Of a DNA stretch of 64,000 nt, positions 15,990 to 63,468 are shown piece after piece (positions within the stretch are counted from its first letter, which is position 1; each line of letters opens with the position of its first letter). The DNA lies in contig OZ176059.1 in NCBI GenBank assembly GCA_964247055.1, forward strand, positions 2,914,001 to 2,978,000. Reading direction: 5' to 3'. The stretch comes from Paragordius varius (Eukaryota; Animalia; Nematomorpha). The notes under the pieces are model-generated. The model worked only from the letters and a program-made list of their open reading frames with translations, did no database searches and was not told where the DNA came from. The position numbers and the translations under genes are program-made.

Positions 15990-16633
15990 TTGCGACCCAC
16001 CCCAGACGTCCTTTATATTTTCTCATGTCATATTTTGTTGATTTTGTTATGCATATGATTCAAAAATTGTTATACTTATTATAATATGATTATTTACCCA
16101 GAAATAAATACATTAATTACAAATTAGTATATTTATAGGATGCATATTCGTAAATTAACTTACTTGAAATCTAAATATGGCGGATTTATACGATCGTCAT
16201 TATGGGTCTAATTAAACATTTTTATATAAATTAAATTTAATTTATACGGTTTCAGAATGGCTTTTGTGTGTAATTAAACTTTAGATACCTTTTTTAGTTT
16301 AGTATGCCAAGGTAATTTTATTTTTATAATTTCTTAGGCATCTGATTTACTATGTCATCGCTAAGATTGGGTCGTTTTTATAATACTGTCGAAAAATAAA
16401 TAAGCCACCGTAATAATTAATATTTAAAAATATTTTATTTGTCATAAATGACCATATCATATAAAAACAATATCGTATCAACAAGTTCTACAACGAATTA
16501 GTTAAAAACGCGTTATAATAAATAATTAAAATATATGTCAATATCATAATTGGGTCTTGGAGGATTGGAATGTTTAAAATGCATGTTATAGATCGCACCG
16601 TTTTCCCACATTTAACACAGTATCTATCCCGTT

Positions 16634-19600: not shown

Positions 19601-20018
19601 TGCTAAATTAGGTGAAAATTGATGTAAATTTATTTTCGGGACAATGAATTGTTTAAAACTTTATTTATTTTAAACAAAAATAACCATTGATAAATATATT
19701 AGTATAAGTATATAAAACATTAAAAAAGGGTTTACCAACTGATGCAAAACGGTTTTCGATGATTGCATAGATTTTTCTGACTCGCGTCGTTTCTTCCACA
19801 ACGTTGATAATTTTAATTTTCCAAACTATTGCATATAATATTATATGCATAGAGGCATATACGCATAAATAATTAAAAGATCCGTTATAAGTTCTTTAAA
19901 AAGGGTTTTTTTAAAGCTATAATACCAAAATTTGAACGACAAGCTTTGTACCACATCTTTTTGCGAACATCCCCGTCATTGATATGATGGGTAGGATGGA
20001 AAAATTCGGGACACCCCA
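16634..20018 (-). CDS. C345C/NTR-domain exons of the C3-like gene
   Basis: Four exons splice in frame: VGCPEFFH..KMWYKACRSNF|VWKIKIINVVEE..IYAIIENRFASV|GITKPVNNKVTFLHKANCPNIFEISAVYLVIG..NSE|PQWIIDENYYVERW..TLNCVL*. This follows the NTR pattern of C3/C4/C5. Confidence 0.88.
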
Positions 20019-22334: not shown

Positions 22335-22383
<49 letters not shown>

Positions 22384-25300: not shown

Positions 25301-28300
25301 AAATTTGTTATGGGATTAAAATATTGATAAAGGTTTATTTTATTTATGCAGGTTAATTTTTTAAATGTATATAAAGTATAAAGACTATTTAATTTTGAGG
25401 ATGAAAATATTTACATGATAGTATAAGTTAATTCATGAATCAATACCAGATAACATGTAAAACAAACTAAGTTATATTTTTCGCTTTTTACTGCTAATGC
25501 CCAATAATTCCCTTGCTTTATAAGCTATCTGTAAAAACTCGAAAAATTAGTAATGTATACTCATGCTGTAACTGTAAACACATAAATATACAGACTATCA
25601 CAGAATATAGCCAAAGTGAACATTAAATAATCACCCATATGTGTTATTATAGTATATTAGTTTTTATTCTACACTTTTAGTGGAGCGGTAGGGCAATCGC
25701 TTTAGCAGACTTTTACTGATGCGCTTAGCATTGATCTCCGCCAACGCTTTGTCCTGTTCTAACAATTGTAATTAATTGCACTGTCGTAAACAGGATTATG
25801 GCTTAAGGTGGCCATGATTTTTGGATATGAAAATCGCGATAGTTATTTCGATTCTAACTTTTGTAGTTGTAAACCATCTCAATAAAAGCATCATGAATTT
25901 TGTTCTCAATATCGATACAATATACCTATTTGGCCGCGGCTAACTTCGGTGCTCTTCTCATTTTTGAAAAATCACACGCTTTAAAGACATCATCAGTAAA
26001 ATATTTTCGCCTCCTATTATTGTCTACCAATCGCATTCTATTAACGAGTGAGACAAACAAATAATAAGAATAAAAGTTTGCAGTCATTATTACTCGGCCT
26101 AAAGAATTTTTTGCCGTGAGGGCGGTATAAAAGATAAAATTTTTACCATTTTCATACCCTACTTGCAGCGCTACTTAAATATTGTAGCCAAGAAATCGAA
26201 GAAAGATACATGTTTATATTGTAATTAATAGACAAAATCTTCTATACGTTAGATAAAGGTTTTGTAGTGAAATGTGAACATTTAAATAATTTATGAATAA
26301 ATGTAAATGCAAATGTAGTACACCATACAAGTTATATAAGTACCAATGTTTGTACAAGTATAATGATTATTATGATTTTAAATGTTTTAAATTTATCGTC
26401 TTTACTTATTAATACTAACGCTGTTTTATGGAAAATTCCAGAATCAATTTAATAAGCTTTGGAAAATATTTGCAGCACATGAAACGTGTTTTTGTAGTTA
26501 AAGGATTGCCGATAGATGATAATAATTGTAAATTCCTGGTCTATTCCGGTATCTACGCAAATAAGCTGGATCAATATTTGTTTCACAAGCCTTTAGACGA
26601 TTGTAATTGGGCCACCATATTGGAAGCGGGAACAAAAAATTTTAATTCGAAAATAAATGTTTTCAAAGCCCGATTCGATTTTGCTAAGTTGAAAAGATCC
26701 CCGGATGAATCATTTACCAAATATTTGCTACAGGTTAAGAAAACCGCTGTTAAGTTTAACGGTAGCGTTGTCGAGGAGTTCGGGATGCATTCATAAGCGG
26801 ATTGCAACTACAGAAGCTTGAATTAAAATTCCTAAACCGTTTTCCTGACACAAGAATTGATGGTCAACCGATAAGTTTGAATACCATATTCGATATTGCC
26901 ATGAATAATCATAAAAGGGCAAAAGAATGTTTCGCTGTGAGTAAACATCACCGTCACGCAATTGTGCAAACTCTACGACAGACGAAACACCATTAACCGA
27001 TGTCTCGCGCTGGGGAAACAAGGCCTTTACTGAATGGGGACATTTTCATTAGAAATGTACAAAACTACCCGGGTAATATCGGAGTCCATAGAAGCCGCCC
27101 GGATAAACGCGAGCCTTAATGGACTCTAGAGACAAGTATGCAGTACTATACCGGATCGTCCGTATCAATCATCAATGGTGTCATTTGCAAGGTTGGTAGT
27201 CAAAAACTGAAAGCGCTGAATGTTGACGTGGTACGCTATGGTGAAAACAAGGTGCACACATTGGACTAGATGGAGCTGTGGGTTAGAGTGGAAATCGCAA
27301 AGAACTATTATAATGCGTCGCGTATGAATAATGCCTACCTTTTTTGGTGGGATTGATTAAGATGCTCAACAATACACATTGCAATCATATTAATGTTAAC
27401 ATTTAAATTAATTTGATGATCCTTTTTTGTAAAGCAAAATTAGGATGTAAGGCTCCGCATATAAGTTATTATTAAAAGAATCTTAGTGCAAAAGTGTACC
27501 CTTGCCACTGCAACCAAAAATTAAGGATGAAGGATTAATAAGTTTAGTAAAAACATGTATTTAACTAGTAGACCCAAAGAAATCGACATGGGCTACCACC
27601 CCACTGTAAATATTAGTATTAAATTGGTTAAATTACAGTAACGAGACCTATTATAGGCCATTTCGGTATTTTAAGTAACTTAAAGTGGATTTAATATACA
27701 TGTGTGTTGCCATATGATATTTTCCATTTTATTAGTTATATATTCAATTGAAAACTGTATTTTTAATCCACAATTCATTTCATACATGGCTATTGACATG
27801 TTAATTATAACCCCTTTTAGCTATTTAAAATAACGTAAAGGCCAATAATTATTTTAGTTACTTAAATGATTCAATTATTTCGCTGTTAATATACAAAATT
27901 AAAATTACCACATACATATATTAACACAAATAATCATAAAATAAACTTCCTTTGGTGGTATTTTAAACCACCATAATTTATTTCACATTTTTAATAAGTT
28001 TAAGCAAGGGATTGAAACCACAAAGGCGTTTAGTTTCGATTCCGGTTTTAAGCCATTTTTATCACTGCTATTCAGAATTTTTAAATAAACGGAGGTGAAA
28101 TAAATAGTGTTTCATTGCAATTTCCAAACAATTATTCCAGATACATACTTTTTTGGTAAGACGGTTTTTTTTGTTTCAATTATTAAAGTTATGTTCGAAT
28201 AAGTCTTGTGGTGTCTTGGTCTCACAAAATAGGTTACGGTTTCAAATGCTTGTTTAAACCATCATTTAATTATGTTTCTTAAAAATTAATGAGAAAATAG

Positions 28301-31300
28301 TCTATGAAAAATATGATTTTTATTGTAACAATTATATAACTAATACCTGATTGTCAAATTTATACGCATAATTTTCCGGCTTAAATGGTGTGTTAACGTG
28401 CTAGGTGTTGATGTTATGGTATATGGCCCAAGGGAACCTAAAAATAATATTTTGCTAATATATATATATTATAATTTTTTAAATATATTTTTAAAAAAAC
28501 TTAGATTTGGCAAATCTTCCAAAACTATGGTTGCATTGAAATGACAAGTATCTTTGAAGATAGGATAGTATTTATATGTGGCAAAATTAGAACCCTTGCT
28601 ATCTTCTTCCTGCTTGATAAAGATAGGTAAATATATATAACATTAATAGATAAACCTGGATTAAAAACATTATAAAACATACTTAGGTTAAATTCGTAAT
28701 TTACAAAATTATTATATAAAATTGAGCAATTAATACCAAACTAAATTTTGGATTCCTAGCTATTTCTTTGGGTTTTACCAAGAAGTTGGAAAGATTATTT
28801 CTAAAATCTTGTAATTCGCTGTTCAACAAGGTTATACTGGAATTACGGCCCGTTGATGAGATAAAGCGAGAAAGTGCGTACAAACCATTCATAATCTAAA
28901 TTTTATGCAGTTTTTACACATATTACAAAATATAATATCATATCAATTTTTCAAACTTTTGTTAAAATTTTATTTATACTTTTTCAGCCAAGGTATGATT
29001 GTTATCGTATGTAGTTTCGTTCGTAGCAAGTAATGCTTTATTGATAACAAACGTTAATCTCTTATACCAATCCCATGCGTTATCATAAAGATTTTGATGC
29101 ATCATTATAAGCAAACCATAACTCAAATCATCCATATCAATCGTGTCAATACTTTCTTATATTAAATGTATTGTTAAAAATATGACCAACAAGAATTCTT
29201 ATATATAATTTATCATACAATTTTGTTAAAATAAATTGATACGAAAAAAGATTATGCTTTACCTAAAATTCACCCTTGAACAAATGAGATGTGTTTTTAA
29301 ATATCGAAAAATACCGATTTTTGATTTTCAAAAAATGAAATTTTGATAAAAAGGTACATAATACCAAAAACGTAATACCATCCAAAGATACTATTAATGA
29401 GGTATAATAGAAATTTTTCAAAATGTTGAGTTTTTCGGAACGTGAGTTTAAAATGATGAGGGGTTAATTTTAGAATACAACATTTTGATAAAATAATAAA
29501 TTATAAAATATTCATACTTTGGGTATAAGACAAGCTTGCAGTGGAAAAACTTTCGTTATTTAATAGTAGGGCATATACTACGTGTAAAGTCATTGGACTA
29601 GATTCCGTATTGGATAAATTTGATTTTTTGATATATGCCAACATTTTAATATGGGCCCTATTTAATTTGTCGACCTAAACAAATTTAATAGTTGAACGAT
29701 TTAACCAATGATTCGATATAAATTAAACTATAGGTATAAAAGATATATGTTTATTTTAATAATAGCAATTACTCGATAGGTGCATTTAACGCATTCGTGT
29801 TTTGCTATTATAACTTTGGCTGTGGCATCTAAATTTGAAAATTCATTAGTCATAGGGACAGAGCCATCTGCCTTCAGCGTTAACGCCCATCTATTTATTC
29901 ATATAAGGCATATTAAAATTATTCAATACATTTCAAGAATATAAATTAAACTACGTAAACAAATTTTACGAAATTTTAAAAAAGTTACTCAAGAAATTTT
30001 TGACAAACGTTTGTTTGTGGAATTATTAGGTATTGATTGTGCATGGCTAGGCAAATGGCTCTAATCAACCATGGTTCATTCAGCGATTTAAGATGTGATT
30101 GTATCCCTAAATGTGTAAAGTTTAATCATATAATTTTAAAAATATATGATAATTAACATTATAATAAAAATAACTACAATACTACAAACCATTAACATTA
30201 ATCTCATCAAAGTTTCCCAACAAAACTTGCATATACTTTTGAATGTAGATGTATAATGCAGCAGTGATGGCGCTTTTTGGTGAATCCAAAGTCCCAACCA
30301 AAGGTTTCAATGTCTTTAGTTTGGTCAATAGTAATGCTGAAAAAATTTTATATAAAATTATTATATATGACATAAATTACAAATTCTAAAAACATACATG
30401 TATTTAATAGATTGGGATACTCTTGTCCAAAAGCGCTTCGTTTGTGGGTTCGACCTACGAATGATTAAAAACATATAAAAAATTGTATAGAAAAATAATT
30501 GATAAATATGAAAATCATCATTTGCACAAAATGAGCCGGTTTGATGAGCATATTACTTAAAAACTGTAATTACCCTCAACAAAATATGCCTTATCAAAGT
30601 AGAGCACATTAAACGGCACACCGAAACTATGTGATTTATCCATGCTTGAATGAAATGGTAAAGGAAACTCAAACAAAATGGATTACAAAAATAGAAAACG
30701 ATAAAAAAACTAATGTTATAACTGAAATGGCATACATTCAAGGTGATGTCGAAAAAATTTGGAAAAAATATGTCAATCTGACTACACCCAACAAATGGAT
30801 GATGATAATGATATCATAGTATATTAGTGTCAAGAATATAACATTTGCCATTTCGTTAATAAGAGACTGAACACCTCTCAAAATAATATTGTAGACAGAA
30901 AATATAAAACCCAAGAACCATTAGTATTAATTTAGGTGTTTTGGATATTATGCTAAATTTAAAGATTAAAACAATCAAAAAAGCTAAAAAAATTAAATTA
31001 TTCTAAAATATGAAAACAACTTTTTTATGAATTCAAAATCTCGTTTGTTTTAACTTATTAACCAATATCCAAATCTTAAAATGGGCATCTTTAAAAAATA
31101 CATATTAAGGTTTATTTTGTATATTTTTAGTTAAAATACTGAAATTTTTTTCGGTATGCATGAATGAATTTATAACAAACTAAAATACATAAACTTATCA
31201 ACAATGTTAGATTTTATATATAGCATATCAGCTGCTTCTAGGCTTGCCGCGATAATTTAGTCAAAAAATTATTTGTAAATTAAATTTTTATAGTAATATC

Positions 31301-33650
31301 GCATTCTAAGGAAGTTTAATTGACCATAATTGATTTGAAATGGGACCACACATTTCCTAAAAATTCAAATTCACTTTTTTTCACCCTTATAAGAGCACAT
31401 TGACTCTAAAAGACATTATTCCTACATACCTTTTTTTGCTTTCAAAAATATTTTTGAATAACTTTAAAAACGTTAATTTTACCAGGTGCAGAGTCCAATT
31501 AAAAAAGCGTATAAATAAATATCCTTTGTTAAATTTGACCGTTAACCCGTTTATTAAAGGATAGTTTCACGAATAAGATTTTGATAATTTGTATTTAAAT
31601 AAGCTTGTTTCATGAGGGGGTTAAACAAAGACGAATTCAAAATGCATGACTATGCTCGGTGCATTTAATAATTAAAATTTATCCATAATTTTATTTTTAA
31701 ATTTAAGCATGCTTTTGGCGGAATTGTTTGAAAATTAAGATTTTATATGGACACAATTTACATAGAATAGCGCTCCTCAGCTAATTTATTAAAAAATTTA
31801 TAGATATACATTCATGTATTCTCATACATTTTTTGGGGGATAACGGAACCACTTGTGTCTGGTTACACTTTTTTGACTGGTTAATAAAAAAACCTTCACC
31901 AAAAAATATGAAACAAGAATATTAGTATATGGAAATCGAAATAAAATAGGACATTTTAAAATGCCAGTCAAAAGGTCAAATTTAAATAAATAAACTGATG
32001 TTTTGATATGATAACGGAGAGAGAATAAAAATAAATAGTAATTGTTTAAAGTGAAAATTACATTTTATATTATAGATGATGGGTCAAGAGTGGTTTGTTA
32101 TGACTATTATTAAAGGTGTTATTAACTGTTTACGGTTATAAAAAAATTTAATTTAATAACATACCGGAGATGCTTTCGAAAACGAGATTTCTTTGTGGGG
32201 TACCATCATGGTTCTAAATCATAAATGATCAATAAATATAATTGTGGATAATCAATAAATAACATGTCACAAATATAAACTAAAATAAAGATATTCAACA
32301 ATAATATGTGTTATTTATAGAGTCAAATAAATAGGTTTTTAAAGGAAATTTTATTTTATGGAACTCTTAATGGTATAGTTGTCAAATTATTATAGGTGTT
32401 AATTGATAAGAAATTAAAGCTCCATTTAAGTTTGAAGAAAGAATATTTGGTATATATATAAATATATTTATATTATATAATGTATGAGAATCATTGCTAA
32501 CAAAATAATTAACTTAAATAATATTTTAATTATTTTTGGTATATGTGAGACAAAGTAAATCATTTAAGTATAAATTAAAAAATGTATTATAATTTTTAAC
32601 GACTTGACCCAGCTTTGAAGCTCAAACTAAACCGTTATGGCCGAACCCAATGCTAAACCGTACAGAGATACGCTATGAGGCGTTAGGAATAAACACTAAT
32701 GCTTGTTCTTCCACAATAAATTATACATTGTTCATTCTTATGATTAATTTTAATCTGAAATACGCCTTAAAACACGATATATAAACTTTAAACTTAACAA
32801 AAAAATTTATCAATAAAACCAATTATTTTAAATTTTATTTAATTAAAGGCTAGTACTTGATTATAAGGAATAAGCTATTTTTTTAGTTTATGCAGTGTTT
32901 GTTTATTGATTATTGCAAAGAAATTGAATGAAATTTATTTTTTTGGGATCGACCCCATTATATAAGGTTTTCACAATAATCTAAAAATAAAAATCACAAA
33001 AAACAGGGAAAAATAGTTATTAGCGAATCTTAAGGAGAGTGCAAGGAATATTAACTTGAAAAATATTTTCATAGCATCAATTACAAAATAGGAATATAAA
33101 GGGGTCGTAAACGGACTCCGGTTTCAAACGATTTAAAATATTTTGTGATATTTTTAATTTATATATTTTTAATACTGTAGTTAATTTATTAATAATAATA
33201 TCAATTCTGTTTTAAATAGAAAAAATTTTATTTAAATTTTTAAAAATAGCATATAGTGAATTTTGGCGATATAAATTTGCGGCTATTATTTAATATAGCA
33301 AAAATTAGGATATTTATAAAAAATCAACCGAATCAACCATTTAATCAAAAATTAAACCGAAACCACAAATAAAATTTCATAAAAAAACATGGACCGAATT
33401 TTATCCAGAACCGCTTAAAAATATTATGTGGAACTGCAACTTGTACTAGAGTAAATTTTTTTTATAATATTCAATATTTGTTAATGCATATCTCATAATA
33501 AAAGAGAATGGTAAAATATGAATATAAAAATATTTTTTTAATTTTGTATCAGTTGTACGGTTGGATTTGCCGACCATCGGCTCAATATCAAACAGAGTCA
33601 AATCTAATGACATAAACCCCAAACGACTTATCAAACCACGGTGCTCCAAA

Positions 33651-39600: not shown

Positions 39601-42600
39601 TAATTGTTTAATAAATCACAATACATATACGTCATTTATAAGCGCATCCATCCTTAACATTGATCCCACACCACTCCAACCCATTCCACGCAATAATAAA
39701 AATCGAAACCCGGTTTACAGAGTATTTAAATCACAAACAAACATTTACTTACATTTCTCACCACTCTTTTAATTCATTTTTATTAGTTTTTGAAAGGTAA
39801 AAATCATCTTTAAGATAAGCACCTATAATTATAAAAATTCAAAGTTTATACCAGTAATATGCATCCTACATTATCATCTGTGTTGTAGAAATTCTAATAT
39901 ATACAATACGTTTGGCGTTATGTTACACCTTGCTTTCATTGTTACTATTTATTTAAATTTTTATCCATACATACTATTTCGTATTCACTCATTATAATAT
40001 TATTCTTTAACTGTGAATATATGTATATGTATAATTAATATTAACATTTTATTTACCAGGTTGTTTTTTTTACTACTAATATAATTTTTGGTATTTCAAA
40101 TTTAATTTTTTCAAGAATTACCTAACTTACAAGCTCTATTCATACCACACTATATACCCATTCATTAGTAAGTAGTTTAAATTTATGCAAGAAAATAAAT
40201 TCATTCATAATTACATTTTTTGGTTTTATCAATAATATTTATTTTTAATCTTTTTTTGCATATATGACTAAATTTAACAAATTATATTTTATCATTCGGA
40301 CGACGGATTCATACGAACAATATTATGTTTCAATTTAAATTGAATAAAAAAATTTCAGGATTATCGTGCTTTTGTTTGGGCTTACTAGCAGCCCCTTTTA
40401 GAAATTTATTTGTGATTGCTCCATACATAAAAAAATGGCAAAATTGACGTACATTATATCTTAATAAAATTTTTCAATAGATTAAAAGATTAAAATAAAA
40501 TATTTTTAGTTAATACGTATACATAGATTTATGTGTGAAAGTAGGGCTTATATAAATCCAAAAAAAGTTTATTAAACTTGTTTAGCATATGTGGTGGATT
40601 CCGTTCTATAATGCCCCTTAATGGTGCCTTTTTTTCAATATCAATCGCCTATAAATTAATTTACTCTTGCTCATCATCATCAACCAATTTTCTCATTTTT
40701 AATAAAAAATGGATTTTTAGGATATATTAGTTCAAAGTTGAGAACGCCTTCCATCAAATTTATACTAGTTTATGAGTATTTCAAAATTCCCATAATTTTA
40801 TTGTTTTTTTTAAATCATTAGAATATTAATTATTTTACTTTAAATTATTTAATATTAATTAATTAATAAATTTTTTAAAAAAATGGATGGACTCATGTTA
40901 TCTGATATTGGGGTCGTTATGGGGAGAAGGGGTCCACCTTAACGCATTTCGAATGATTAAAATTATTTGAGCAGAATTATTATGATTGTAAGTAAAATAA
41001 TATTTCCTTAAGATTTTAATTTATCAACCAAAATTTTAAATAGAAACATAAGATTTACAAGCCATTTATGAGCACAAAAAATATGAAAGAAAATGGTAAT
41101 ATTAGGTTAAAATTTATATTCAGTGATAATTATATTAAAATGTCGCATTTCGCTACATCTCTCATATTTTTTCACAGTGGTATTTAGATAATATAAGAAT
41201 GCTTAAACAAAAGCACTTCTTTTTCCTAATCAATATGCAAATTGTCATATTAAAATTCAAACTTTGAAACAAAATTGTGGTAGATTCTTACATATGCTTA
41301 TTTTATTTGATATTAAGGTGCCTTCCTACTTTCTCATACGTTATTTACATTAACACCTTAAGGGGGTATATTTTTATTTTTTGAAGACAAGCAGTTTGCA
41401 GTTTTTAACCACAAGATCTGTCAAAGTTACCATCTAATCATTAATGATATGGCAAGAATATGCTCAATATTTAATTAAATATGTATCCAAAGATTAAAAA
41501 TAGTATTTTAAAAAAATTTTTGAAAGATAAATATTTAAAAAGGAACGGTTTGTATCCAATATAATGATCAAAATTTTCATTTTTTTAGCTATTCAAACCA
41601 TTTATAATTTAAATTTACTTGATATTATTTCCCAAAAATATAATCGCCTAACAAATCTATTAAATAGACTTTTTGCACATAGGCTTCCTTTCTATGAAAT
41701 ATGTTTGGATAAAATAAAACACATCTAGTGCACATTAATTCTAATATTTACAATTTAAATTCATCCTAAAAAATTTTTGTTTTTACTATTAAGAACCTAT
41801 ACTTTTTGTATTTTCGAAAAATGAAATTTTATTAAAAAATAATAAACTAAGCCATAACGAGATATTTATATAATGATAAGTTACATTACCCCGAAAACAC
41901 ATAATTTATTTTTAGGGTAAATTTGAATTGTTTACGGATGAATTTGAAATGTTCGAGGGTGAATTTGAATTGTGAATAGCGCAAAATTTATAAATATTAT
42001 ACCTTTGAAACGTGTAGCCATTTAACCAGTTTGTCAATTCTCACATGATTTTCATTTCTATCGTGCTCGTATAGTTCAATGGAGATGGGATAGGCCCCAT
42101 ACATCATAGGTATCAAGGGAAAATGGTATGGTCTAACCGTATAAGCCGGTATTTGTCCATTTTGAGTCGTAAAGCTGGCATCAGATGGGACCTGTAATGT
42201 TTTATGCCCACTATTTTTAGCATCATATTTGGTACAAATCCTGGCATCCTTACGATTCAGGGCTATAGTAAACTTTGACACATAATAAATATTAAAAATT
42301 AAATTCACCAAAGAATATAAGTTGCATCCTAATTGTTATAACATTGATAGGAAAACGAATCCCTCTTTTTCAAAAGAATTAATTGTTTGTTCCGACTGTA
42401 TTTCTGCTATCTACATCCTAAAAAATTGGTAACCCTTTCAAAATCCAAAATAAAACAAAATTCTAATTCTTATTTTTCCTTACTATTGATTGCTTAATTA
42501 ATAATATTGTTTTGTTAAAGTTTAATATCATACATTCAGTTCATTTGATCTAAAATTATGGACCATGACGGTTAAAAGAATCCGTTGACCCACAAAAACA

Positions 42601-45600
42601 TCTCCAAACGGTAATTGGAATGTAATGAAAGCTTGGTATGTGTGATTGTAGGTGAGCTTAATTTCTTCCCTGTTTATGCAAGTTGGTCTGTACGTTGAAA
42701 AACTTTTTACTGTTATATCCCACACACTGTTGCGATCCAATATTGGTATTTGCACATAGTTATGTACACCATCACTTTATAGATATCATATAAGAATACG
42801 TAACATTAATGTTGGTCAATTCACATTAATTTTGGTCGATTAGTAATACAGTAGCTTATAGGTAAAATGGAACAAATGGTTAAAATTAAAAGTTTTTCCT
42901 ATCTTACAACAATAAATTTGTTTATTTATGGACAATATTTGTTTTATACAATACGCTACTGTATTACCCATTGGCCCACATTCATGTGTATCTTGTATTA
43001 AAATTTTGTAGGATAAAATGGTGAGAAAAAATACATATGCCATTTTATTATACAGTATGAGTAAGTATATATTGCTAGAAAGTTATTAATTAATACCAAA
43101 TAGCATATGCAGCAAAGAGTATTGGCTAATAATAGTAAAAAGTGAAAATAACAATAAGCCAATATAACTGCATTATGTTGTATATGCTATTTGGCAATAA
43201 TAATTAGAAACTCTCTAGCAATGTATACTTAAACGTACTGTATATCAACATTATTTGGGAACAATGATTGCTTGAAATCCCTCTTCTTGGGAAATAATTA
43301 GCTTAAAATTTTTATACTAGAGAGAAAAATTTAGTGTAAGTAATTTTTTCGCTCGAAAAAACTATTTAGCCTTAATATGGCTACTTTGATATTTTAAAAT
43401 CTTTAAAATTTTGCGCTTTGGCCCTTAAGTTAATTAAATATTATCTCGCATGGTAAGCCCACATACACAAAGTTTATTATACAAATGTTTGCTTATGGTG
43501 AAAATGGATCTTAATATTTTTTTATTTTCTTCAATGTCATATTAAATAATTAAAAGATACGAATTCCGTCCGGTATTTAAAAAAGTGGTAGAAAAAATAT
43601 GTCAAGCGTTGATTAACGTTTTTAATTGTATTACAATATGAGACATTGCTAATTTTTATTAATTATAACCATATGGAAATTACAGAAGGGCAACATTATT
43701 GACTTAATGTTATTTTTTGCTTTCTACTGCTATTAGCCCTACTGCTATTAGCCAATAACAATGCTCTTTGGTGTATGCTACTGACAATATATAGAAAAAA
43801 TAGCAATGTATTTATTTAATTATACATTAATACATGAATTATATAAATTGTACTATTTGGGTTGGGTTTGTTGATTATAATGCTTACCGTGACTGCTTAC
43901 ACAAAAATGGTCAATATACCATTTACAATTTAAATTCACCCTTAAACAAATCAAATTCACCTTCGAACAATTCAAATTTACCCTTAAACAAATCAAATTC
44001 ACCTTCGAACAATTCAAATTCACCCTCAAATAAAATATATGTTATTTAGGATTAACAATTACCTGTATTTTATACATTTTTAAAAAATATAATACTGAAA
44101 AAAATAATAAACTATGCTATAACGATATATTTCATATTAATAATGAGTTATATTTGTTCGAAAACACATGATTTATTTTTAGGGTGAATTTGAATTGTTC
44201 AAAGTGTAAATGGTATATCTTAAAACATCACCTCGCATTGCGTAAAACAGGGGTGGCCAACATACGGCCCTCTGAAACATTTAGTGCGTTTGGAAATCCA
44301 TAATTTGCAAAAATATGGACACAAATGTTAAAGTTGGTAGGTAATTACTGAGCAAAGTTTCTGAATAAACTATTTAATTGAAACTAAAAAAAATTCTTAT
44401 ATTGTGTTTGCATTTTGCAGTTTTGTATATGAAATCTAATAAAGTTTTTATTGCCCTCAAGAATTTTAAATACGTGGCCTATGAGGCCATTTGTGTTGGA
44501 CAGCCCTAGTCTAAAACATCAAGTTTAAAGTCATATCCTTAAAGACAGGAAAGTAAACTGCGTTATCAAAGCATTTAAAACTTCATATAATTATCAATTA
44601 AACAAAGAATATTGTTTACTTTAAATAAAGTGATCCAAAATAGGGATTAGAATTTTGTGTTCTAATGTTTCTCCAATCATCTAAAATATAGAAATACATT
44701 TGTTAAGATAAAAATATTAAATATACTTAATATGGCCACAAATAAATATATGAGATATTGTATCTTAAAGTAATATAATTATAAAATATAGGTAAACTCT
44801 TCAAATCCAAATTATAAAAGTTTTCAAAAAAGAATATATATCGTTACATGACTCCTACATATCCAATTATTATTTAAATATATATAAATTCTCCCAGCCT
44901 TCATTTTAATTAAGGATATTTTAAAACATCTCAAAAAATTAATAACATAATATTTATTCTTAATAATGGATTTTTAGTATAAATTTAATATGTTTTTCAA
45001 CCGATTTTTAATTACGTTAAACTTATCCGTCTCTGAAGCATATTTATTAATTCACTGTAACAAATTTTTAAATAGAAGGCAGTTATTAAATTACCTATGT
45101 ACAGATCTGGACACGGTTTTCCCATAGTATTTGGGGTCCCTTCATAGTTTGGTAAATTTGACCTTAGAATCAAATCGGTTTCATTCAAAAAGCTTGTAAG
45201 GTTATTATAATTATCATTATTAACAAAATGATGTTGAGTCCAACCATTGTTCTATATAATAATTATGTTTACAGAGCAAATTTAATAATAATTGGGTTTA
45301 AACATGTAAAATGAATTAATTATTTTTCATCAAAAAAAGAAAGGACTTTTAGAATCCAAAATGAATATTTGTCAATTTTTATGTACTTTTAGTCATAAAA
45401 ACATACATATCTTTTTACAAAATTTTAATAAATCTAGGTCAGTTTATAATTATACAACCAGCTAATAGAGATTGCATTAACAAACTCGTTAAGCTCATTA
45501 AGTAGGTATTATGCGTAATAAACGGTGTTTACAAGCTTCATCCATACTAATATTTGATGCAAAGTTATCATAATTAAAATATAAATATTTTTTTTAACAA

Positions 45601-48600
45601 TTTTCAAAAGAAAAAGCCTCATCGTGCTACAATCCAAAACGATGATTTGTGTATCAGGTTTATAAAATATTTTTGCAGCAAAAACTGTTTTTGGAGTTAA
45701 CTGGGGCTAATTATACAGCTATCAAAATGTATTGGGCGATAAAAAATATGCCAAGCGTTTTCCAGATAATGCTATAAAATTAACGTTTAATAGGAGACGC
45801 ATAGAGTGTTTCTATTTATGGGCTTATTTAAATAAAGCGTTTTATAATAATATTACCTTAACAAGAATTACTTGACCATTTATAAATTAAATAGTCCTAT
45901 ACCTATAACTTTACAATACATATACCTTAAAAAAATAAATGTTAAAAGTTCTAATTTTACTGATGGTGTGGCCGAACATAGGGCTAACTCAAAAAGTGCT
46001 TCTACTATGTTTGGCGTATTCAACAAAAAATAAATAATATATTTTATTAATTTGTGAAAATTTTTTTTTTCCGTAAAATATTTTACGACTTTTGGGAAAC
46101 ATATATTTTTTTAAATTTTATTTTATATCCGACTGACCACAGGATCTGAAAAAAGTGTCTCGATATGTGACTTGCAATTATTTTCGTTGAATTGACCATA
46201 AAATATCAAGAATTACAAATTTTCTACCAAAACGTGGGTGCCCTTTCATATTGAAAATAATGATAGATGTGCAAAAACACATGATTTTACAGGCGGTGGA
46301 TCTAGTTAACTACAAAAGGTGAATCTACTATAATCGACACTAATACAGAAAATGTATGATAATATTTTTAGATATCAATAGCACTAAACCTTTCACGGAT
46401 AATTATTTCAGAAATACAATTTTTTTTCTGGAGGCTTTTTCATTGTCCAAGCTCAATAGTTTTGCTTTTATAGTAGAAAAATCTGCGACAATTTTTATCA
46501 TTTTGATAAATTTTGCGATAAAATTTTTATGACAACTCCATATTTTACACCGTCTAGAGCTTAACCAAGGATAAATGACTTGATTATGCTCGACGCATTA
46601 TAAATCAATAAAATATATGTGTTACAAAAATAAAATGGACCTATACATAGTTTGAAATAATGCTTCTAGGATAGTATTTTTATAACTTATTTTGAATCAT
46701 CTAATTTTTGAAAATCTGTTGAAAAGACAAACACTTTGCAACAAAAAATAGTTACATGGCATGCATGATTTAAGAAGTGTTTTGGCTCGCATTCATACGA
46801 TGTAAAGATTTCGACTTCATACAGAATTAACCTTAATTTGAACACAAATACGATTTGATATTAAATTTTTTTATGAGGTTAAAAATGTTTTAAATTTATA
46901 CAAATCATGTCATATATATGTACAAACTTATAATTAAATTGAATAAAACCGAGATAGATATAAAATAAAATGCTAAATTTTTTTGCCATAATTTTCTCAT
47001 ACTTTAAAAAAAACTTACCTCTATTATTAGATCAACTTCGGAATATGCCAAATGCCGTAAACTATCAAATCTGTTTTTCGCCATCCAAACAACAGCTGAA
47101 TATGGGTAACCTGTAAATTCTAATTCAAAGCTTGTATTTACTTGCGGTTTTTTAACTATAACGGCTTTAATCTATATTAAACATAATTTAATACTTTTTA
47201 GATGTTTTAAAGATTTAAATTGATGTTATAATGCAAGAATTTAAAATATGGCTACCACTGTTAATTAAAAATGGACCCCCCGTTTCATTGGGTCCCTTCC
47301 CTATTGTGGAAAAAATATATGATTTAATCGCATCATGACCCTTTTTTGATAAGTGATTAAATTTTCATGGCAATCTCAATTAATATTCGGTGTTTCTTAA
47401 ATAATATATATATATATATATATATATACATAATTTTGCTAGTAAAAAATAAATTATTTTTGGTTTATTATGAGATTATCAACAAGGTACTTCATTTAAA
47501 ATTGGGAAATGTGTGATGATCAAAATAAGCCATTTAGTGATTCACTGTTTATTTCAAAAAGGTTATTATGAGGGCAGGTCACTAGGTATTTAATAAGTAT
47601 ATAATGCCGTCTCTTTCAATCACTTATAATTTAGATATAAAAAGAAAAAAATAATAGTTTAACGAGTCATTTCTTAACAAAATGATATTTGTCTACAACT
47701 TATCTTGACATAAAACCCCTTATAGATTTCCAATAACTGACTAACCTATATAGGGTACCATTTTTTGGTGTTTTTTTTATCCCCGATTAAAGAGTCATCA
47801 CCGTTAACCGGGAAATAGTCAAATCAAAAGAATTTTAAAAAGTTGATATTTGGTCGTAAAATTATTTATTTTAAATAAATACCTTCTCGCAACTAAAATC
47901 ATCCCATTTCGTTTCGATATCTAACCAATCATACGCCATGGTGTCAAGATCATTACGAGTGTGGAAACCATAAACTATTACTCGAAATTTAGGATACATG
48001 TTAGGGAGTATTGGTATGTCAATTTGGGTTCGCTTGATTAACGTTTTATGATATGGTACATTGGGATTATTTAGTGACCATTGGTCGGTGAATAATGCCT
48101 CATTTATTCCAATTTCTTTGTGATATTTTATCATACCATTTACTAAAATCTGAATAAATGATAAATATATATTTAAAAAAATTTAAAATACAGCTTAACG
48201 TGTTACAAAATATAAAATATGGCATAAAACTTTATTAATATTTTAATCCATAGAATATCTAATTATCATAAATAATGATAGTTATTTTTTAAATCTTATA
48301 ACGTAATTTTTACATTTTTAACAACATAAATTTCCATTTAAGGTGTCAAATCAACTTGTTATTACTTTAAAAGACTACATTTATATGCGATACGATCGGT
48401 TATTATTTTTAACCGGCTAATAATCCTATATTCATATTTTTTGCATTGATTTTATATGATAAATTCTTACTGCATAATAAAGAGTAGGAGAATTGATTGT
48501 AAAATTGTCATTCATGTTATAAACGACATGAATGGAATGTACAGTATTAATTTTGGGGATTGTATCCATGGTTGGCCGCTGAATTCGAATAAAATTTGAT

Positions 48601-51600
48601 GGAATTGGCTTGATGATTCTACTTCTCGCTAAATTTATCTATTTTTTATATAATTTATTTATCATGTGTGCAACACCAAATGATGGGTGAATATCATTAA
48701 AAAAGTGTGTTTATATAATTTATAAATTTATATGTCCAGATTTTTTGCGTTTTTTAACTTCACCCTTATACATTAATTTTACCCTCGAAAATTTCAAATT
48801 TACCTTTGAACAGTTTAAATTCACCGTAAAATTAAATTATGTGTTTTATTCTAACTCACTTTCGATAGGAAATATCTACTTATGGAATAGTTTATCATTT
48901 TTTCTGTATATGTTAATTTCAACAAAGGTTCATTTTTATAATAGCTAAAAAATAGGTAATTTTTGATGTCCAAAAACATAATTTATTTTTAGGGAGATTT
49001 TGATATGTTTAAAGGTCAATTTGAGATGTTCAGGGGCTAAAATGAAATATAACGTTTATCTGTAATTGATATGTTGAAGGGAATTCAAGGTGTAAATGGT
49101 ATATATTAAAACAAGTCATTAATTATGGCCGTTACAAAATTGGTATTGTACTTTTTTGATTTTAACAGTTATGGTGATTGTATGATCCATGTATTGATCA
49201 AGAGCATTTTGTTGGCCCATAGGAATTTGGACATTAAAATAACCTTGTGTGTCTGTGATCGTTTCTTTTTTACGCGAAAACATCGCATATGTTTCACTGA
49301 TAGCCAATGCGTTCACATTTATTTCTGCATTAGGTAATGGACTATTGCCAATTGTTATTCTACCCTAAAGAGAATTACATAAAAAAGTCATAAAACATAA
49401 ACAAAAAACAGCCAAAAGAAAAAAAGTTAAAAAATGCAAGTTATTAAAAAATATTTAAAAATTTAAAACTTCCAATCCTTAAGAATGAAAAAAACTTTAA
49501 TTAACAAAAATACAGTACACCTTTTTATTGTTGGCCAATTGGTAATACAGTAGCGTATGGTATAAAAAGAATTTTGTCCACAATTAAATAAACGATTTTA
49601 ATGTTGTAAAATAGCAAAAATCCCATTTGTTGTTTTTCATCCATACGTTACTGTATTGTTATTTGGCCAAAATTAATGATAGTCGAAATCAAAAGAATAA
49701 GTATTCCAATGAATGGTTTTATGAAAATATATAAAATTTGCAAACTTTCACAATATACGGTATACCAGGAATGTAGAACGCTTGCATATCCTTATCAAAT
49801 ATTATATGATGATGAGAATCACTATTAATATTATTATTGGTATTTCTATCAACAACGGGGTTAAATTGAACCACATTTTTATAAACCCGTACGATTTGAT
49901 ACCCTGATTGGAATTCGGTTATGACAAATTTCATAAAAGTTACAATATTTGATAGATATGTCTTAGACATTGCTCGATACTGTAGATCACCTAAAAAATC
50001 ATCAGCCCTTAGATTAACAGTTATCTTTGAGCATTCCATCTACGTATATAACAAAAGTAATTTTATACAACAATTTCTTTTTGAAACATTAAGTATTCGA
50101 AAATTAACATTGTTTGTAGAATTCAAATATTGTAAATCAAAGAATTATTATAATCCTTGAAAACCTTAAAGGATCGTTCATGATTTATTTCAACCAATGT
50201 AGCGTTATTGACATGCACAACGCCAACACTCATTACAACATCTGCATGGAATGGATACCCGGATAAACATTGTTTTGGATTTACTGTATTATCTATAATT
50301 TTTACGTTTTTTAATGTCATGGTATAATATGCATTTATTTCCAGTGTAAGGGTATCGTGTATGCTTAAGGACTGTCGTTTAGTTAAATTCAAACGGATAT
50401 CAAAAATTGTGTCCACACTTGTACTCTGTTTAGTTTTCAGAGTGTTATAAGGAACTACAAGAAAGGAAAAGCGCGGGCTTGCTGATAAAAACTGTGTAAA
50501 ATTAGAAATAAAATATATAAAGAATTAATTTTTAATTAAATAAATTTGAAGGAAATTATATAGCTTATTTGTGTGGTTCCGAAATATGTAAATTGACACA
50601 AAGTACCGCTTTATCAAGCAAAAATTCTCTGACATATAAAAAGAAACCAACAAAACTTTATAAATTGTTCAATATTCCTTATTATTTTATGATATTTAAT
50701 AATCCTTAATTATTATTGATATCTTTAACCGTTTTGTATATAGTTTGTTAAAATAATATAATATTCTATTAAATATATCCTAAAAGCATGTAGTATAATG
50801 AACTACGCAAACATATATAAGTAAGTGCTTTTTTCCTTAATTACAAAATTAAAAATTAATTAAATAATAATTATATAGGATATAAACATTTTATATTCAA
50901 TCAAAAGAGTTAATATTTCAAATTATTAAAAAAATTTAACGTTAGGTCCGGTCCAAGCCTCTACATGCCAAACGCCATATTCACAATTAGCGGGTAGATT
51001 ATAATTAACCGTTACTAGTGAGGAACTACTATAATTTGTGGTATAATGTTGAACCGTATGGATAATTTTTTCCGTTGGGTCCTAGAAACGGAATAGTTAA
51101 GAATTTAAAACTGATGTTGTATTCGGTAGAATATTAATGCGACCAAATTATAAAAATTTTAAACATTAAAGTTTTAGCATTGGATAAAATTGGTGATAAT
51201 ACCAAACATACTCAAAAATAAATATGCCACCATATCTAGGGGGCATATCTGATTTATCAGATATCCAACTAGTATAATTTTAATTTTATTTATAAATTGA
51301 ATTTTTCTTATGGCTTTAAAGTCAGGATTCCAAGTATATTATTTTTTAACCACTAAATGCGCTACATATTAGGGGCAAATTACTAATTATCTTGGCTATT
51401 ATTTGAGTTAAATGAAATACTTTCTCCGTAATTTAATACAAAAGAGCAATATTATCCTAAAAATGGTTCAAAGTCAAATTTATGGACAATAAAACTTTTT
51501 TGTTGTGCAAACTTTTTTGTGAGATGATTTTATTACCTCTTTTAACGCAGTGAACATTTGTAACTTTTATAAAATAAAGTTTACATAATTTATAAGTTGT

Positions 51601-53347
51601 TAAAAAAATATAGCTGAATAAAAATTTTTCTCAAAGTTAAAGCCGATTACCCTCATTTTCCCTAATCAGCACAAAAAAATTCTTTTGTGCGCTGCGTAGC
51701 ACACAAAAAGAGGTTTGACTGTATAGTAATATTTGGATTTTTAATAAACATTTTAAGTTTTTACCTTGACATTTATGAGAATGGGAGAATCCAAAGCAAT
51801 GTAATGATCTTCAGTATTTATGGGTATGACAACAAACATTACTTAGAGAATAGATAAATAAAATTTATGGATTTAATAAATATATAAAAGTTGCCAAATT
51901 TGAATAAAAATAATTGGTCATTTTCGAAGGGATATTAAATTATATATATTTGATATTATTTATTTCATATCTAACATTTAAACACAATCCTCCACAATGA
52001 TACAGGTCGCTTATATTAAATTATTATCTATATTATATTTTGAACCGAGTCTAAAATATTTTATTGGTTTTTGAATCGTTTTTTAATTTGTGGGATTTTA
52101 TTAACAATAATTTTTTCATGATTAAGATATTCTTATAATTTTGGGATGATTGACAAATTCAGACGGAAATTTGAAAATATCTTTTTTTTTCACTTGTAAT
52201 TGGGTATATGAATGTTTTTTTAGTATTGTAATTACCGTCTCACTTAAACAATTCAATTTATAAATAATTAGTTAATATTATAATTTAATTTTTATGGATG
52301 GATTCAAATTAGCTTTATTAGGATCTCATGGGAAATGTATTTTTTAAATTATTATTGAAAAAAACAGAGGTGGTAAAATTAAAAAATTGAAATTAAACCA
52401 TTTAATAATTATTTTTGTTAATATATACAACTTTCAAACGCTAAATAAAAATTTTACCTGCATCGTTGGGATAATAAATGGCCTGACTTTTGTCAAATGT
52501 CACATTAAAAGTTATGGGTTTCGGACGTATCGGTATATAAATTTCTTCAATAAATTTGTATTTTATATTATCACAAAATAGTTTAATGATGGCCGTTGTC
52601 GTTAAAATTTTACGCGTTCCCCACTTCAAGTCTCGCGTGCCATCCCCTGATGAATAATGCGGATATGGTGTTTTATCGAAATGCTTATCAATCACATTTG
52701 TTTCAATGTGCGATTGAGATCTTGTTTTTAAGGGACTTGTTTTGGATGACTTTTCGTATCGAACCAAGACATCAGAACTTATTATAAATTCAACGGGAGA
52801 TACGGCTATAAAATATGGTGTGTATGGTATAAATACTTATATTAAAACAAAAAGCGTTATGAATTATTTTAAAACAAATATATAAAAAAATATTTGTTTA
52901 AACCAAAGTTTGAGGTTTATTTAAAAATTATATATAAAATAAAATTACCATTATATGATTCAGTTAGGATTTCTTTTGAAAATAGTGGGATATTCTCATG
53001 AGCAAAGTAGCCAAAAATTTGTATGTGGATTGTAATGTTGGGTGCTATGTCAGCAACGTGAATTAATAGTTGTTGTTTGCTATCCAAGATTAGGCTCTTA
53101 GGAGCCCATAACAAATATTTTTGACTAAATTAATAAAACACGTGACAAATATATTTAAATATAGTCGTCTGCTTCATGCAATAAAATAATGGAAAACAAT
53201 TATATCGTTTGGCTATTCTGCATTCAAAAATAAGCATGACATGAAATATTAAAATTAAATTAATGCTGTATTATACCTCCTAAACAATGGTATCTGGAAT
53301 AATAAGATAGCAATTGTAAATATTTCAAAAATGGATTTGTGTTTCAT
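16634..53347 (-). CDS. Divergent complement C3-like protein (A2M/TEP family with C345C/NTR domain), multi-exon, secreted
   Basis: Collinear exons with compatible phases where adjacent. Signal peptide 53347-53277 (MKHKSIFEIFTIAILLFQIPLFR). MG1 from 53124 (KYLLWAPKSLILD). MG2: VTFDKSQAIYYPND (~52470), LPANCEYGVWHVEA (~50970). 48142-47883: IPILPNMYPKFRVIVY..AYDWLDIE..C. 47171-47019. LNK 45251-45095. 44680-44620. MG6/7: ILDRNSVWDI..FQLPFGDV..VHNF (~42770-42535) and DKLVKWLHVSK (~42000). TED exons 30454-30398, 30336-30190, 30106-29989, 29890-29773, 29674-29518, 29155-28980 and from 28895. MG8 25180-25021 and 24743-24509 (IQPAIIQI..CEFFYTP..C..CICFE). C345C 20018-19926, 19825-19736, 19390-19270, 16784-16634 (WIIDENYYVERW..LNIFIQAM..C*). 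Exons between ~40.7 and 30.5 kb are only partly resolved. Confidence 0.88.
17230..18880. repeat. Degenerate tandem satellite, ~155-bp monomers alternating as a ~285-325-bp dimer
   Basis: The anchor GCGCCACCATA or variants occur at ~17410, 17559, 17710, 17874, 18031, 18201, 18350, 18489 and 18638. It is preceded alternately by AAAACT and AAAAAT. Confidence 0.8.
20365..22681 (-). mobile_element. PIF/Harbinger DNA transposon with ~700-bp inverted arms, internally deleted
   Basis: Termini GGGCCAATTGAATAAAAGCTA / TAGCTTTTATTCAATTGGCCC. Arms 20365-~21054 and ~21967-22681 are reverse complements. The core contains a Harbinger transposase fragment. No clear 3-bp TSD. Confidence 0.88.
21384..21878 (-). 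pseudogene. Harbinger (HARBI1/DDE_Tnp_4-type) transposase fragment
   Basis: Motifs IGCIDCSH, YINRKG, LLGDNGYPLSPWLLTPF and IIERVFGQMKTRFPIL are present. The PGSxHD motif is missing, and the N- and C-termini are truncated. Confidence 0.9.
22750..24420 (-). mobile_element. Degenerate RTE-type non-LTR retrotransposon (RT fragments plus Cys-rich insert)
   Basis: Broken frames encode PIITAEDVSLSMQK; LKLLEHTTKLFKIIVERKIR..FGFQQGVSTSDAIFIL (23673-23921); LEKFGLKI..FPCFICHSEV..IKCTKC..FVCKAC (23079-23396); KGKIYTIAFRPALSYASERW (22753-22986). Confidence 0.85.
25681..27400 (+). mobile_element. Ty3/Gypsy LTR-retrotransposon remnant (gag and decayed protease region)
   Basis: 26428-26796 encodes KARFDFAKLKRSPDESFTKYLLQVKKTA, resembling the Mag-type gag consensus. 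Frameshifted gag continuation at 26802-26996, followed by decayed protease-like text. Possible PBS TGGAGCGGTAGG at 25681. No paired LTR found. Confidence 0.65.
36847..39180 (+). CDS. Small heat-shock protein with three alpha-crystallin (HSP20) domains, 777 aa, intronless CDS
   Basis: Long open frame with raised GC. The TTG start of the track ORF lies upstream of an acceptor (tattacag at 36800), so the ATG at 36847 is preferred. ACD1 ~37762-37992 (LDMKEFLPQDIKVK..KEFNREFTLP..GVMTLEAP). ACD2 ~38503-38730 (LDLNGYDPDDIKV..REFNREYTLP..DGILTIE). ACD3 ~38950-39177 (FDMKDYMPEDIKVK..REFSREYVIP..EGVLTVE). Confidence 0.93.
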   Translation: MNSSSFKPLNNGHSNNNNNTNGYNGSKNHRHTSTLTIPVNINNHGNSIKHGGGAGANYKNGNNTMKQPVNDDGILAHELERMNVKMNELRKSFDDLTSDGQRTSNGRNNDRDGIIGVKIQTKQPPTQSNATSTTAERYYPSARNSSTVNGKSNNGGWSNGNKYFSDNERVIGDVGNGGKHTTASSFATMPRLKQSTTNTYNGLTGAQNNDFGNEFDREIQDFRRNFEDFGRKSTTAYSSASHTDDRHSIKVIHNTDVGKSGRNRSNRDILFGTPDSGLGSSSAANTTLGMGTNIFDGELTGSSNKSLYQVTLDMKEFLPQDIKVKIVDNKLLRVEARMDARTDTGGTVQKEFNREFTLPSNVNTDALVSRIDNYGVMTLEAPYLVSGTNDTVERSSFGRGDGMTDHNISHNKSHNHDFSPNNKYSNSTSRSYSTTKNEFTKPSFNFNKPNKSFFDDAYNNSYHYNPPSTFNNWASGGPASTMPRRKYSLTNNGYGGFGHRKMPSFLDDFPHTPPLWDDFNNHRTDNKFVPSAGMIGTTASAALGLPKSSGDVPFRLKLDLNGYDPDDIKVNVCDNSLLRVQARHEAKGVNGTVSREFNREYTLPAHVDPDTIHSSFSRDGILTIESVATGPAAQERSYIPVKHNNTYKGDSLQNDYTSNKKVFSSDTHHFKDNNSNNNNDAHHITSSSLDNSGITRGTKETPFRLTFDMKDYMPEDIKVKVLGSKLRVEAKHVEESLERGSIIREFSREYVIPTNVEAESLRSSLSNEGVLTVESVL
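42830..42978. mobile_element. Small palindromic MITE (second copy 49531-49670)
   Basis: GGCCAAT.GGTAATACAGTAGCGTAT ... ATA.G.TACTGTATT termini and interior are shared between 42830-42978 (reverse orientation) and 49531-49670. Confidence 0.7.
43051..43242. mobile_element. TA-flanked palindromic MITE (~190 bp)
   Basis: TA|CAGTATGAGTAAGTATATATTGCTAG..CCAAATAGCATATGCAGCA is mirrored by TGTTGTATATGCTATTTGG..CTAGCAATGTATACTTAAACGTACTG|TA. Confidence 0.75.
43915..44217. mobile_element. MITE family A copy
   Basis: TATACCATTTACA ... TGTAAATGGTATA termini, with about five 21-bp repeats on the left and one on the right. Degenerate copies at ~2430-2680, ~41746-41972 and ~48755-49103. Confidence 0.85.
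44248..44508. mobile_element. hAT-type MITE (~260 bp)
   Basis: CAGGGGTGGCCAACA ... TGTTGGACAGCCCTA. The 8-bp flanks GCGTAAAA / GTCTAAAA match at 6/8, consistent with a decayed TSD. Same end family as 5936-7538. Confidence 0.75.
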
Positions 53348-62931: not shown

Positions 62932-63444
62932 ATTTGCGTTATGTATTTGTAGATTCAATATCAAGCACAGAAGCGAATAGTGTCTTGGAGTGCGAAGTAA
63001 TTTTTATTTGTAAATGGATTGTTTTAAATATCATTTTTTTAATAATTATATAGTTAATCCAAATATAATCTCAAAGTATCATGAAAAATCGTATAAATTG
63101 CTTCTAGTTGAAAAAGAAACAACAAATCACTTTTTACAGGCTATATTAACAAACACTTTAACAATTAGAATATATATATATATATATATATGATGCATTA
63201 TAAATCATGTTAATTTAAACATCATATAACGCTAACAAATATTTATATTTTATTATTGATATTTTATTATGTGTAGAATACCTGTGATGATGAAATTTTA
63301 TACCACAGTTCCATGTTAAGACATCGACCTTCTTGCATTGATGCACAATCCGATGCATTTTTGTCACAATATTTAAATGGTAATACCAAATCCGAAAGCG
63401 ACACACAAGATTTGATTGAACAAAAAATGTCCATTCTTGGTTTG
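58499..63444 (+). CDS. EEF2K: Eukaryotic elongation factor 2 kinase (alpha-kinase), partial: first exon(s) unresolved, 3' part beyond the window
   Basis: Exons 58499-58590, 58633-58757, 58792-59017, 59963-60118, 60382-60514, 61181-61314, 62176-62287, 62953-62996, 63277-63444, all phase-compatible. Motifs: [111 protein letters not shown]. Confidence 0.95.
62887..62925. repeat. (TA)n microsatellite; others at ~2157, 20668, 22342, 33654, 47403, 55547, 61138, 62014
   Basis: Directly visible dinucleotide runs. Confidence 0.95.
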
Positions 63445-63468
63445 GTAAGTTTGTATGTGTTTTATATA

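Follow-up and report, generated by a model that had tools for sequence, protein, structure and literature searches.

The minus strand of a 64,000-nucleotide stretch of the Paragordius varius genome (contig OZ176059.1, positions 2,914,001 to 2,978,000 of assembly GCA_964247055.1; this whole stretch is hereafter the window, and all unprefixed positions refer to it) carries a gene related to the alpha-2-macroglobulin (A2M)/TEP/complement superfamily, and this gene encodes no canonical Cys-Gly-Glu-Gln thioester. The reading that we favor, and hold to be probable, is that the region from ~53347 to ~27600 represents one intact-looking, single-copy gene for a secreted and extremely diverged member of this superfamily, in which the thioester was lost and the homologue of the thioester box lies within the exon 31994–31900. 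The window belongs to a 110.6-Mb, 44-contig animal genome with ~27% G+C, and Pfam scans as well as the other searches were run one exon or one open frame at a time.

Absence of a canonical thioester motif

When all three frames of the minus strand were scanned between 20000 and 54000, no CxEQ motif appeared in an exon-like context. The sole CxEQ match, a CMEQ at 40427, was rejected, as a stop follows five codons on without a GT donor in between and the segment cannot splice onward. Versions of the motif split by an intron, either an acceptor followed by ..EQ or a donor preceded by GC or P.G, were likewise absent from any suitable coding context on the gene's strand; split-motif matches at 37000–39100 are antisense to a plus-strand gene. 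As a positive control, a six-frame search with PF07678 together with the same regular expression recovered thioester exons with the usual motif at three further loci of this genome (Table 1), and the method therefore sees the motif where it is present. These scans, covering the whole as well as the split motif, bear out the observation of an earlier note on this DNA that no CGEQ is encoded between the last macroglobulin (MG7) exon and the exon containing SAFG.

The absence of CxEQ is meaningful only because the surrounding gene is of the A2M/TEP family, an assignment resting on four weak but collinear Pfam matches. From ~53.3 kb down to ~27.6 kb the minus strand contains several stop-to-stop open frames of 80–133 codons, and those of 103–133 codons compare with a usual length rarely exceeding 50 codons in DNA of 27% G+C. 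A first exon with a start codon and a signal-peptide-like segment joins the MG1 exon in phase (..S QKYLLWAPKS..), followed along the gene by open frames matching MG2, the bait-region domain and the A2M domain. Each of the four Pfam matches is weak by itself, lying below or near its cut-off, and it is their collinearity that carries the weight: four matches to the same superfamily, in the correct order and on one strand, are in our assessment not chance. At the level of sequence, we regard the N-terminal half as shown to be of the A2M/TEP/complement superfamily. The gene is single copy, its exon frames matching nothing but themselves genome-wide, and tblastn of all open frames of the window against the four paralogous loci returned repeats only, revealing no BLAST-detectable exon common to this gene and the other family members of the genome.

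Exon chain of the putative thioester domain

Downstream of the macroglobulin exons, we delineated a chain of eleven exons (MG7, X2, X3 and A to H), for which a script check confirmed AG/GT borders, matching phases and the absence of any stop. The helical part of this chain comprises at least ten short exons, extending from 32213 down to 28779. Codon usage, evaluated in a leave-one-out manner, was positive for nearly all exons, and the newly delineated X2, which has consensus splice sites, reached log-odds of +0.43 bits per codon, exceeding the 99th percentile for open frames within introns. In an exhaustive list of the open in-phase AG..GT segments leading from X2 to exon A, all those longer than 15 residues start at the 31994 acceptor; the in-phase donor choices end this exon at 31915, 31900, 31894, 31867 or 31828, and none of these versions contains CxEQ. 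If X2 and A are both exons, X3 is their connector, and on these grounds we infer that X3, which sits in an 80-codon open frame and has many Phe, Leu and Ile residues, is itself an exon. A CUB-strand-like open frame at 32513–32385 (..IPNILSSNLNGALISYQ) was rejected, having no GT ahead of its stop.

Because of their position, their length, the order and spacing of their motifs and their coherent splicing, we read the helical exons as the putative thioester domain, in this family an alpha/alpha toroid set in the CUB domain. The region has the last macroglobulin exon on one side and CUB2/MG8-like exons on the other, and from the X3 Cys as far as ..YALSRF it measures ~300 residues, the length of a thioester domain. 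Compared by eye, the motifs YLNT.YQ, SAFG and, after a further 9 residues, NT-x-L..(L)KT follow the order and spacing of A2M and CD109. Toward the C-terminal MG8/receptor-binding domain, in-phase exons with by-eye beta-strand patterns continue to ~27600, and the open frames 28115–28261, 28472–28642 and 27683–27820 gave no Pfam match.

The 147-nt exon C is symmetric and could be skipped without a change of frame, in which case the B-to-D join creates a TGG (Trp) codon reading ..NLLNT-W-IQSH.., which recalls the NTW motif of the family. This likeness could be a coincidence, or exon C could be a cassette or a duplicated hairpin exon.

Probable position and reading of the thioester box

To locate the box we used human A2M (7voo_A, 925–988 and 983–1027) and CD109 (9fx2_A) as canonical reference sequences, via alignment with the paralogue exons; the comparison was made by eye, and pairwise shuffle z-scores are low. 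In both proteins, counting back 35 residues from the Tyr of YLNTG leads to the thioester Cys. Exon A has the corresponding Tyr at its residue 17; the canonical Cys position is therefore reached 18 residues before exon A begins, within the exon that precedes it. For the Cys within exon A (SCIL), the distance to the Tyr of YLNTN is only 15 residues, 20 too few for the thioester Cys, and the exon A tail (..LMKQAYLNTNYQNLI) and exon B (RRTHKRSAFGQEYPNLLNT) pair by eye with consecutive A2M segments. In X3, the Cys at residue 15, embedded in K-C-P-I-L, precedes the Tyr of YLNTN by 34 residues when the 31900 donor is used, against 35 in the canonical proteins, and downstream of it ..TNILVSYFL pairs with ..PNIYVLDYL. 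This register suggests that the box reads K-C-P-I-L where the family has G-C-G-E-Q, with the Cys kept and Gly-Glu-Gln gone. Possible too, though ranked below the spacing-based register, is one in which FD...PY would correspond to GD...PY with GCGE deleted; neither register contains a thioester.

The earlier note had proposed the exon 31649–31571 as the best candidate for the thioester position, aligning its SCIL to GCGEQ. The exon itself holds up, with AG/GT borders, phases that fit its neighbors and the translation SCILNSSLFNPLMKQAYLNTNYQNLI, but the alignment fails on spacing: this exon appears to be the next helix, with the homologous position in the previously unnoticed exon 31994–31900. 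The helices of the thioester domain resemble each other, such that alignments by eye can slip by one hairpin, and the spacing from the conserved anchors YLNT.YQ, SAFG and NTW is a safer guide to the register.

A second degenerate box is found elsewhere in the genome (G000:C1:11119273-11119524, plus strand; loci L015/L021), in an exon reading GDVVGPMF..LDLPYWSGDHIAFNLGVNFYTLRYL with PYWSGDH at the box position. At that locus this exon alone was detected (PF07678, E 0.012), amid repeats and a transposase frame, and the locus may be a fragment.

Table 1 Exons and domain-matching open frames of the minus-strand gene, and the control loci for the thioester motif. Slashes mark exon–intron borders.
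Feature	Position	Strand	Translation or match	Splicing and remarks
Exon 1	53277..53347	-	ATG and signal-peptide-like MKHKSIFEIFTIAILLFQIPLFRR	Donor AG/gtataa; sequence read directly
Open frame with MG1 exon	52920..53129	-	Pfam MG1, E 1e-4, 22.9 bits (cut-off 23.6)	
Open frame with MG2-like exon	50929..51081	-	Pfam MG2, E 0.13	Weak; in the expected order along the gene
Open frame with bait-region-domain exon	47874..48182	-	Pfam A2M_BRD, E 0.008	
Open frame with A2M-domain exon	42531..42776	-	Pfam A2M, E 0.04	
Last macroglobulin (MG7) exon before the thioester-domain region	42003..42272	-	Ends ..IDKLVKWLHVSK	Donor /gtataa; phase 0
Exon X2, new	32165..32213	-	NHDGTPQRNLVFESIS plus one base	Acceptor gatttag/, donor CCG/gtatgt; phase 0 in, phase 1 out
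Exon X3, new, likely thioester-exon homologue	31900..31994	-	(V)YLFKFDLLTGILKCPILFRFPYTNILVSYFL	Good pyrimidine tract before the acceptor; donor TTG/gtgaag
Cys codon, X3 residue 15	31951..31953	-	K-C-P-I-L	34 residues before the Tyr of YLNTN (31900 donor)
Exon A	31571..31649	-	SCILNSSLFNPLMKQAYLNTNYQNLI	Resembles the A2M helix 20–35 residues after the thioester, by eye against PDB sequences, no statistical support
Exon B	30398..30454	-	(R)RTHKRSAFGQEYPNLLNT	Resembles A2M/CD109 ..DGS(Y/F)S(T/A)FG......NT; shuffle z 2.2–2.3 against the equivalent exon of the paralogues
Exon C	30190..30336	-	(S)LLLTKLKTLKPLVGTLDSPKSAITAALYIYIQKYMQVLLGNFDEINVN	147 nt, phase 1 to phase 1; start SLLLTKLKTL.. resembles A2M
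Exon D	29989..30106	-	(G)IQSHLKSLNEPWLIRAICLAMHNQYLIIPQTNVCQKFL	His codon 30095-30093
Exon E	29773..29890	-	(E)WALTLKADGSVPMTNEFSNLDATAKVIIAKHECVKCTYR	
Exon F	29518..29674	-	VDKLNRAHIKMLAYIKKSNLSNTESSPMTLHVVYALLLNNESFSTASLSYTQ	
Exon G	28980..29155	-	(K)SIDTIDMDDLSYGLLIMMHQNLYDNAWDWYKRLTFVINKALLATNETTYDNNHTLAEK	
Exon H	28779..28895	-	IMNGLYALSRFISSTGRNSSITLLNSELQDFRNNLSNFL	Helical-domain end and start of second CUB half; other in-phase donor ends the exon at 28737
Control locus	C10:2652347		GCGEQ	
Control locus	C4:5452694		GCGEQ	
Control locus	C3:2068769		GCAEQ	

Possible registers of the catalytic-histidine loop

As the helix pairs that make up the thioester domain resemble one another, two registers fit by eye for the loop that carries the catalytic His. 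If the register is anchored on SAFG and NT(W), helices 3 and 4 come from exon C (..SAITAALYIYIQKYM compared with ..HITQALIWLSQRQ of A2M), the loop ..GNFDEINVNGIQSHLKSLN.. falls at the exon C/D junction with a His present, and exon E lies one hairpin further. The His of IQSH in exon D is located at +116 from the X3 Cys, and exon E spans about +144 to +182. In this superfamily a catalytic His (or Asn/Asp) is expected about 100–116 residues past the thioester Cys. The Cys-to-His distance in human C3 is 116 residues. In TEP1 the His is described as lying ~100 residues downstream (PMC5489563).

The earlier note had proposed a loop of about half length, devoid of His, in the exon 29890–29773. Exon borders, phases and translation of this exon agree with our analysis, and no His is present in that register, which also fits the spacing if exon C is an extra hairpin; an equally good register, however, puts a His at the C/D junction. 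Single-exon shuffle z-scores against the domain exons of the paralogues reach at most 4.5 and are not collinear. As there is no thioester, the His would have no catalytic role.

Expression and alternative explanations

If the box is read as Lys-Cys-Pro-Ile-Leu, it offers neither a Gln partner nor the Gly-Glu spacer, so that an internal Cys-Gln thioester could not form. The protein, if made, would then be unable to attach covalently to targets and would act by non-covalent binding or conformational trapping, like the known thioester-less relatives. A non-covalent or scaffolding role, as the earlier note had predicted, is a reasonable expectation, and not a novel one. In this reading the gene would be expressed and functional, with X3 in use.

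Several results weigh against this interpretation. Taken singly, the helical-domain exons gave no Pfam or PDB match, even at E 10 (X3 included), and the six-frame genome search with PF07678 did not pick up the window. A homologous-protein search with the paralogue exons retrieved 21 fragments for the thioester exon and none for the T3-T4 and T2-T3 exons; a profile built from these 21 fragments and the four paralogues ranked the X3 open frame only 348th of 1956, and the custom profiles do not rank the other helical exons. At −0.17 per codon, X3 resembles introns in its codon usage, and X3 and A both have weak coding statistics. A phmmer search of 1.8 billion representative proteins with the 133-residue exon frame returned no orthologue or self protein, only three low-complexity false matches. 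The first CUB half appears ~20 residues short, and a further exon for it, sought between 42003 and 32213, gave no convincing candidate. Finally, of the words sampled from 47800–53200, a 5.4-kb stretch covering the N-terminal exons, none occurred in the RNA-labelled runs of the species; they did occur in the DNA runs X1 to X5, of which X5, from a relative, contains 28% of them.

A rival account is that the locus is a relic that decays or is never expressed, either as a pseudogene or as a gene being lost, with the missing thioester one symptom of relaxed constraint instead of a change in function. The extreme divergence without paralogue or library match, the empty RNA-labelled runs, the seemingly truncated first CUB half and the weak statistics of X3 and A all fit such a relic, as do another gene inside the 9.8-kb intron and transposon remains just downstream. 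Open frames of 103–133 codons at 27% G+C, eleven consecutive short exons that stay in frame, free of stops and bordered by canonical splice sites, the intact start codon and signal-like exon and the largely positive codon usage speak against decay, and we regard the relic as unlikely. The failure of every profile or pairwise method to recognize any helical exon could instead mean that the exons between 31994 and 28779 encode a helical insert, unrelated to the thioester domain or strongly remodelled, at the site that the domain once occupied, for which a lost box or His loop would be meaningless. In line with such an insert, the shuffle z-scores against the paralogue domain exons are low and not collinear, and a language-model look-up (ESM-Atlas) of exon G returned noise only. 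The placement exactly between the last macroglobulin exon and the CUB2/MG8-like exons, the domain-like length of ~300 residues and a motif run matching A2M and CD109 in order and spacing nevertheless render the insert distinctly improbable.

That a canonical thioester exon was simply missed, by lying outside 20000–54000, being absent from the assembly or splicing non-canonically, draws on the long MG7-to-X2 interval (9.8 kb) and on the incompletely accounted first CUB half. This explanation is close to refuted and retains hardly any probability: the exhaustive three-frame and split-motif scans are negative, the flanking exons were found and are connected in phase by an exon devoid of the motif, and PF07678 detects every other thioester exon in the genome and none near this gene. 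Returning to a diverged gene with a lost thioester, one elaboration is that of a lineage-restricted, fast-evolving secreted protein in which the Cys and a His at C3-like spacing were kept with Pro-Ile-Leu in place of Gly-Glu-Gln. Provided that the fold persists and the Cys stays buried, such a protein might use a free thiol for disulfide exchange or metal binding, or a purely conformational trap. We consider this a very unlikely, speculative elaboration; if true, it would be a different capture chemistry on an old scaffold in an animal with three canonical thioester proteins.

Genomic neighborhood

Nested on the opposite strand, within the 9.8-kb intron that runs from the MG7 exon (42003) to X2 (32213), is an 811-codon open frame (36745–39177, plus strand). 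It encodes three Hsp20/alpha-crystallin domains (Pfam E 4e-45) and, N-terminally, a long part rich in Asn, Ser and Thr. Transposon remains are located downstream of the last recognizable exons (~27600), at 21387–24027 (minus strand) and 26419–27266 (plus strand), comprising frames similar to gag and to reverse transcriptase, the latter matching a contig C1 copy, and a DDE_Tnp_4 transposase frame (E 6e-19). A short dispersed repeat at 43856–44041, 41889–41987, 48723–48836, 63218–63568 and many other places recurs in the introns of the gene and in all four paralogous loci; it yields misleading open frames and BLAST matches. Upstream of the gene lie alpha-kinase domain exons (58787–60531, plus strand; Pfam E 3e-18), and downstream a CDC73 N-terminal exon (11437–11862, plus strand; E 2e-7).

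Comparison with known members of the superfamily

The designation "C3-like" used in the earlier note did not find support. A six-frame genome search with PF01759 for the C345C/NTR domain matched contigs C8 and C5 and not the window, where extreme divergence could hide the domain, and the open frames of 16491–20043 gave no NTR match even at E 10. No anaphylatoxin CC...C...C...C pattern was present in any minus-strand frame of 16000–54000, and no ANATO match was obtained with Pfam in the scanned open frames. Complement C5 is a thioester-less family member acting through non-covalent assembly. It possesses an anaphylatoxin domain and a C345C/NTR tail, whereas neither was detected in the window gene, and no evidence places this gene in the C3/C4/C5 branch.

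The premise that thioester loss is known in the family, for which C5 and Mcr had been named, is well founded and documented also for the snail proteins A2M-2 and C3-2 (PMC5489563; PMC9363628). Drosophila TEP6/Mcr have Ser for Cys in the box, and the Biomphalaria boxes read GGGEM in A2M-2, GLMEE in C3-2 and GSGEQ in TEP-3; as the authors of these studies point out, function can persist without the box, in immunity or in epithelial biology without covalent attachment (PMC5489563; PMC9363628). If expressed, the window gene would add one more independent thioester loss, in a very diverged single-copy gene beside three canonical relatives in the same genome. This would help to annotate the immune repertoire of this genome and be a further sign that some family members can do without covalent tagging; it opens no new question, as C5, Mcr/TEP6 and the snail proteins A2M-2 and C3-2 have already been described as members without a thioester, together with their non-covalent roles.

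Like Mcr and the thioester-less TEPs of insects and molluscs, the window gene appears to keep the domain train with a box unable to form the bond. A degenerate box such as KCPIL is an Mcr-type feature, but one common to several unrelated thioester-less lineages. In Mcr, Ser replaces the Cys and an LDL-receptor class A (LDLa) module is inserted, replacing the bait/ANA region, whereas in the window gene the Cys is kept, Gly-Glu-Gln is replaced, and no LDLa-like ..SDE or C.DG..DC-type pattern occurs in any minus-strand frame. The divergence also far exceeds that of the Mcr-type relatives, the thioester domain being invisible to Pfam. Based on its sequence, we file the gene as a diverged A2M/TEP superfamily member lacking the thioester box and not Mcr-like in architecture.

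Human A2M and CD109 (7voo, 9fx2) provide the best by-eye matches for the YLNT.YQ ... SAFG ... NT.L..LKT run and for the Cys-to-Tyr spacing, yet both have GCGEQ and are recognized by every profile, while over the thioester region the window gene, with KCPIL, is recognized by none. The canonical TEP genes of the same genome (the three control loci of Table 1) share with it the superfamily and a structure of many short exons, and differ in encoding GCGEQ or GCAEQ in one conserved exon ending ..G. This exon ends at the same place (..TG/) in the 21 public-assembly fragments and in the canonical paralogues, indicating a widely conserved intron position. The window gene, in contrast, has other intron positions: it reads continuously through this point (YLNTN-YQNLI) and is split 17 residues upstream of the Tyr and again after YQNLI.

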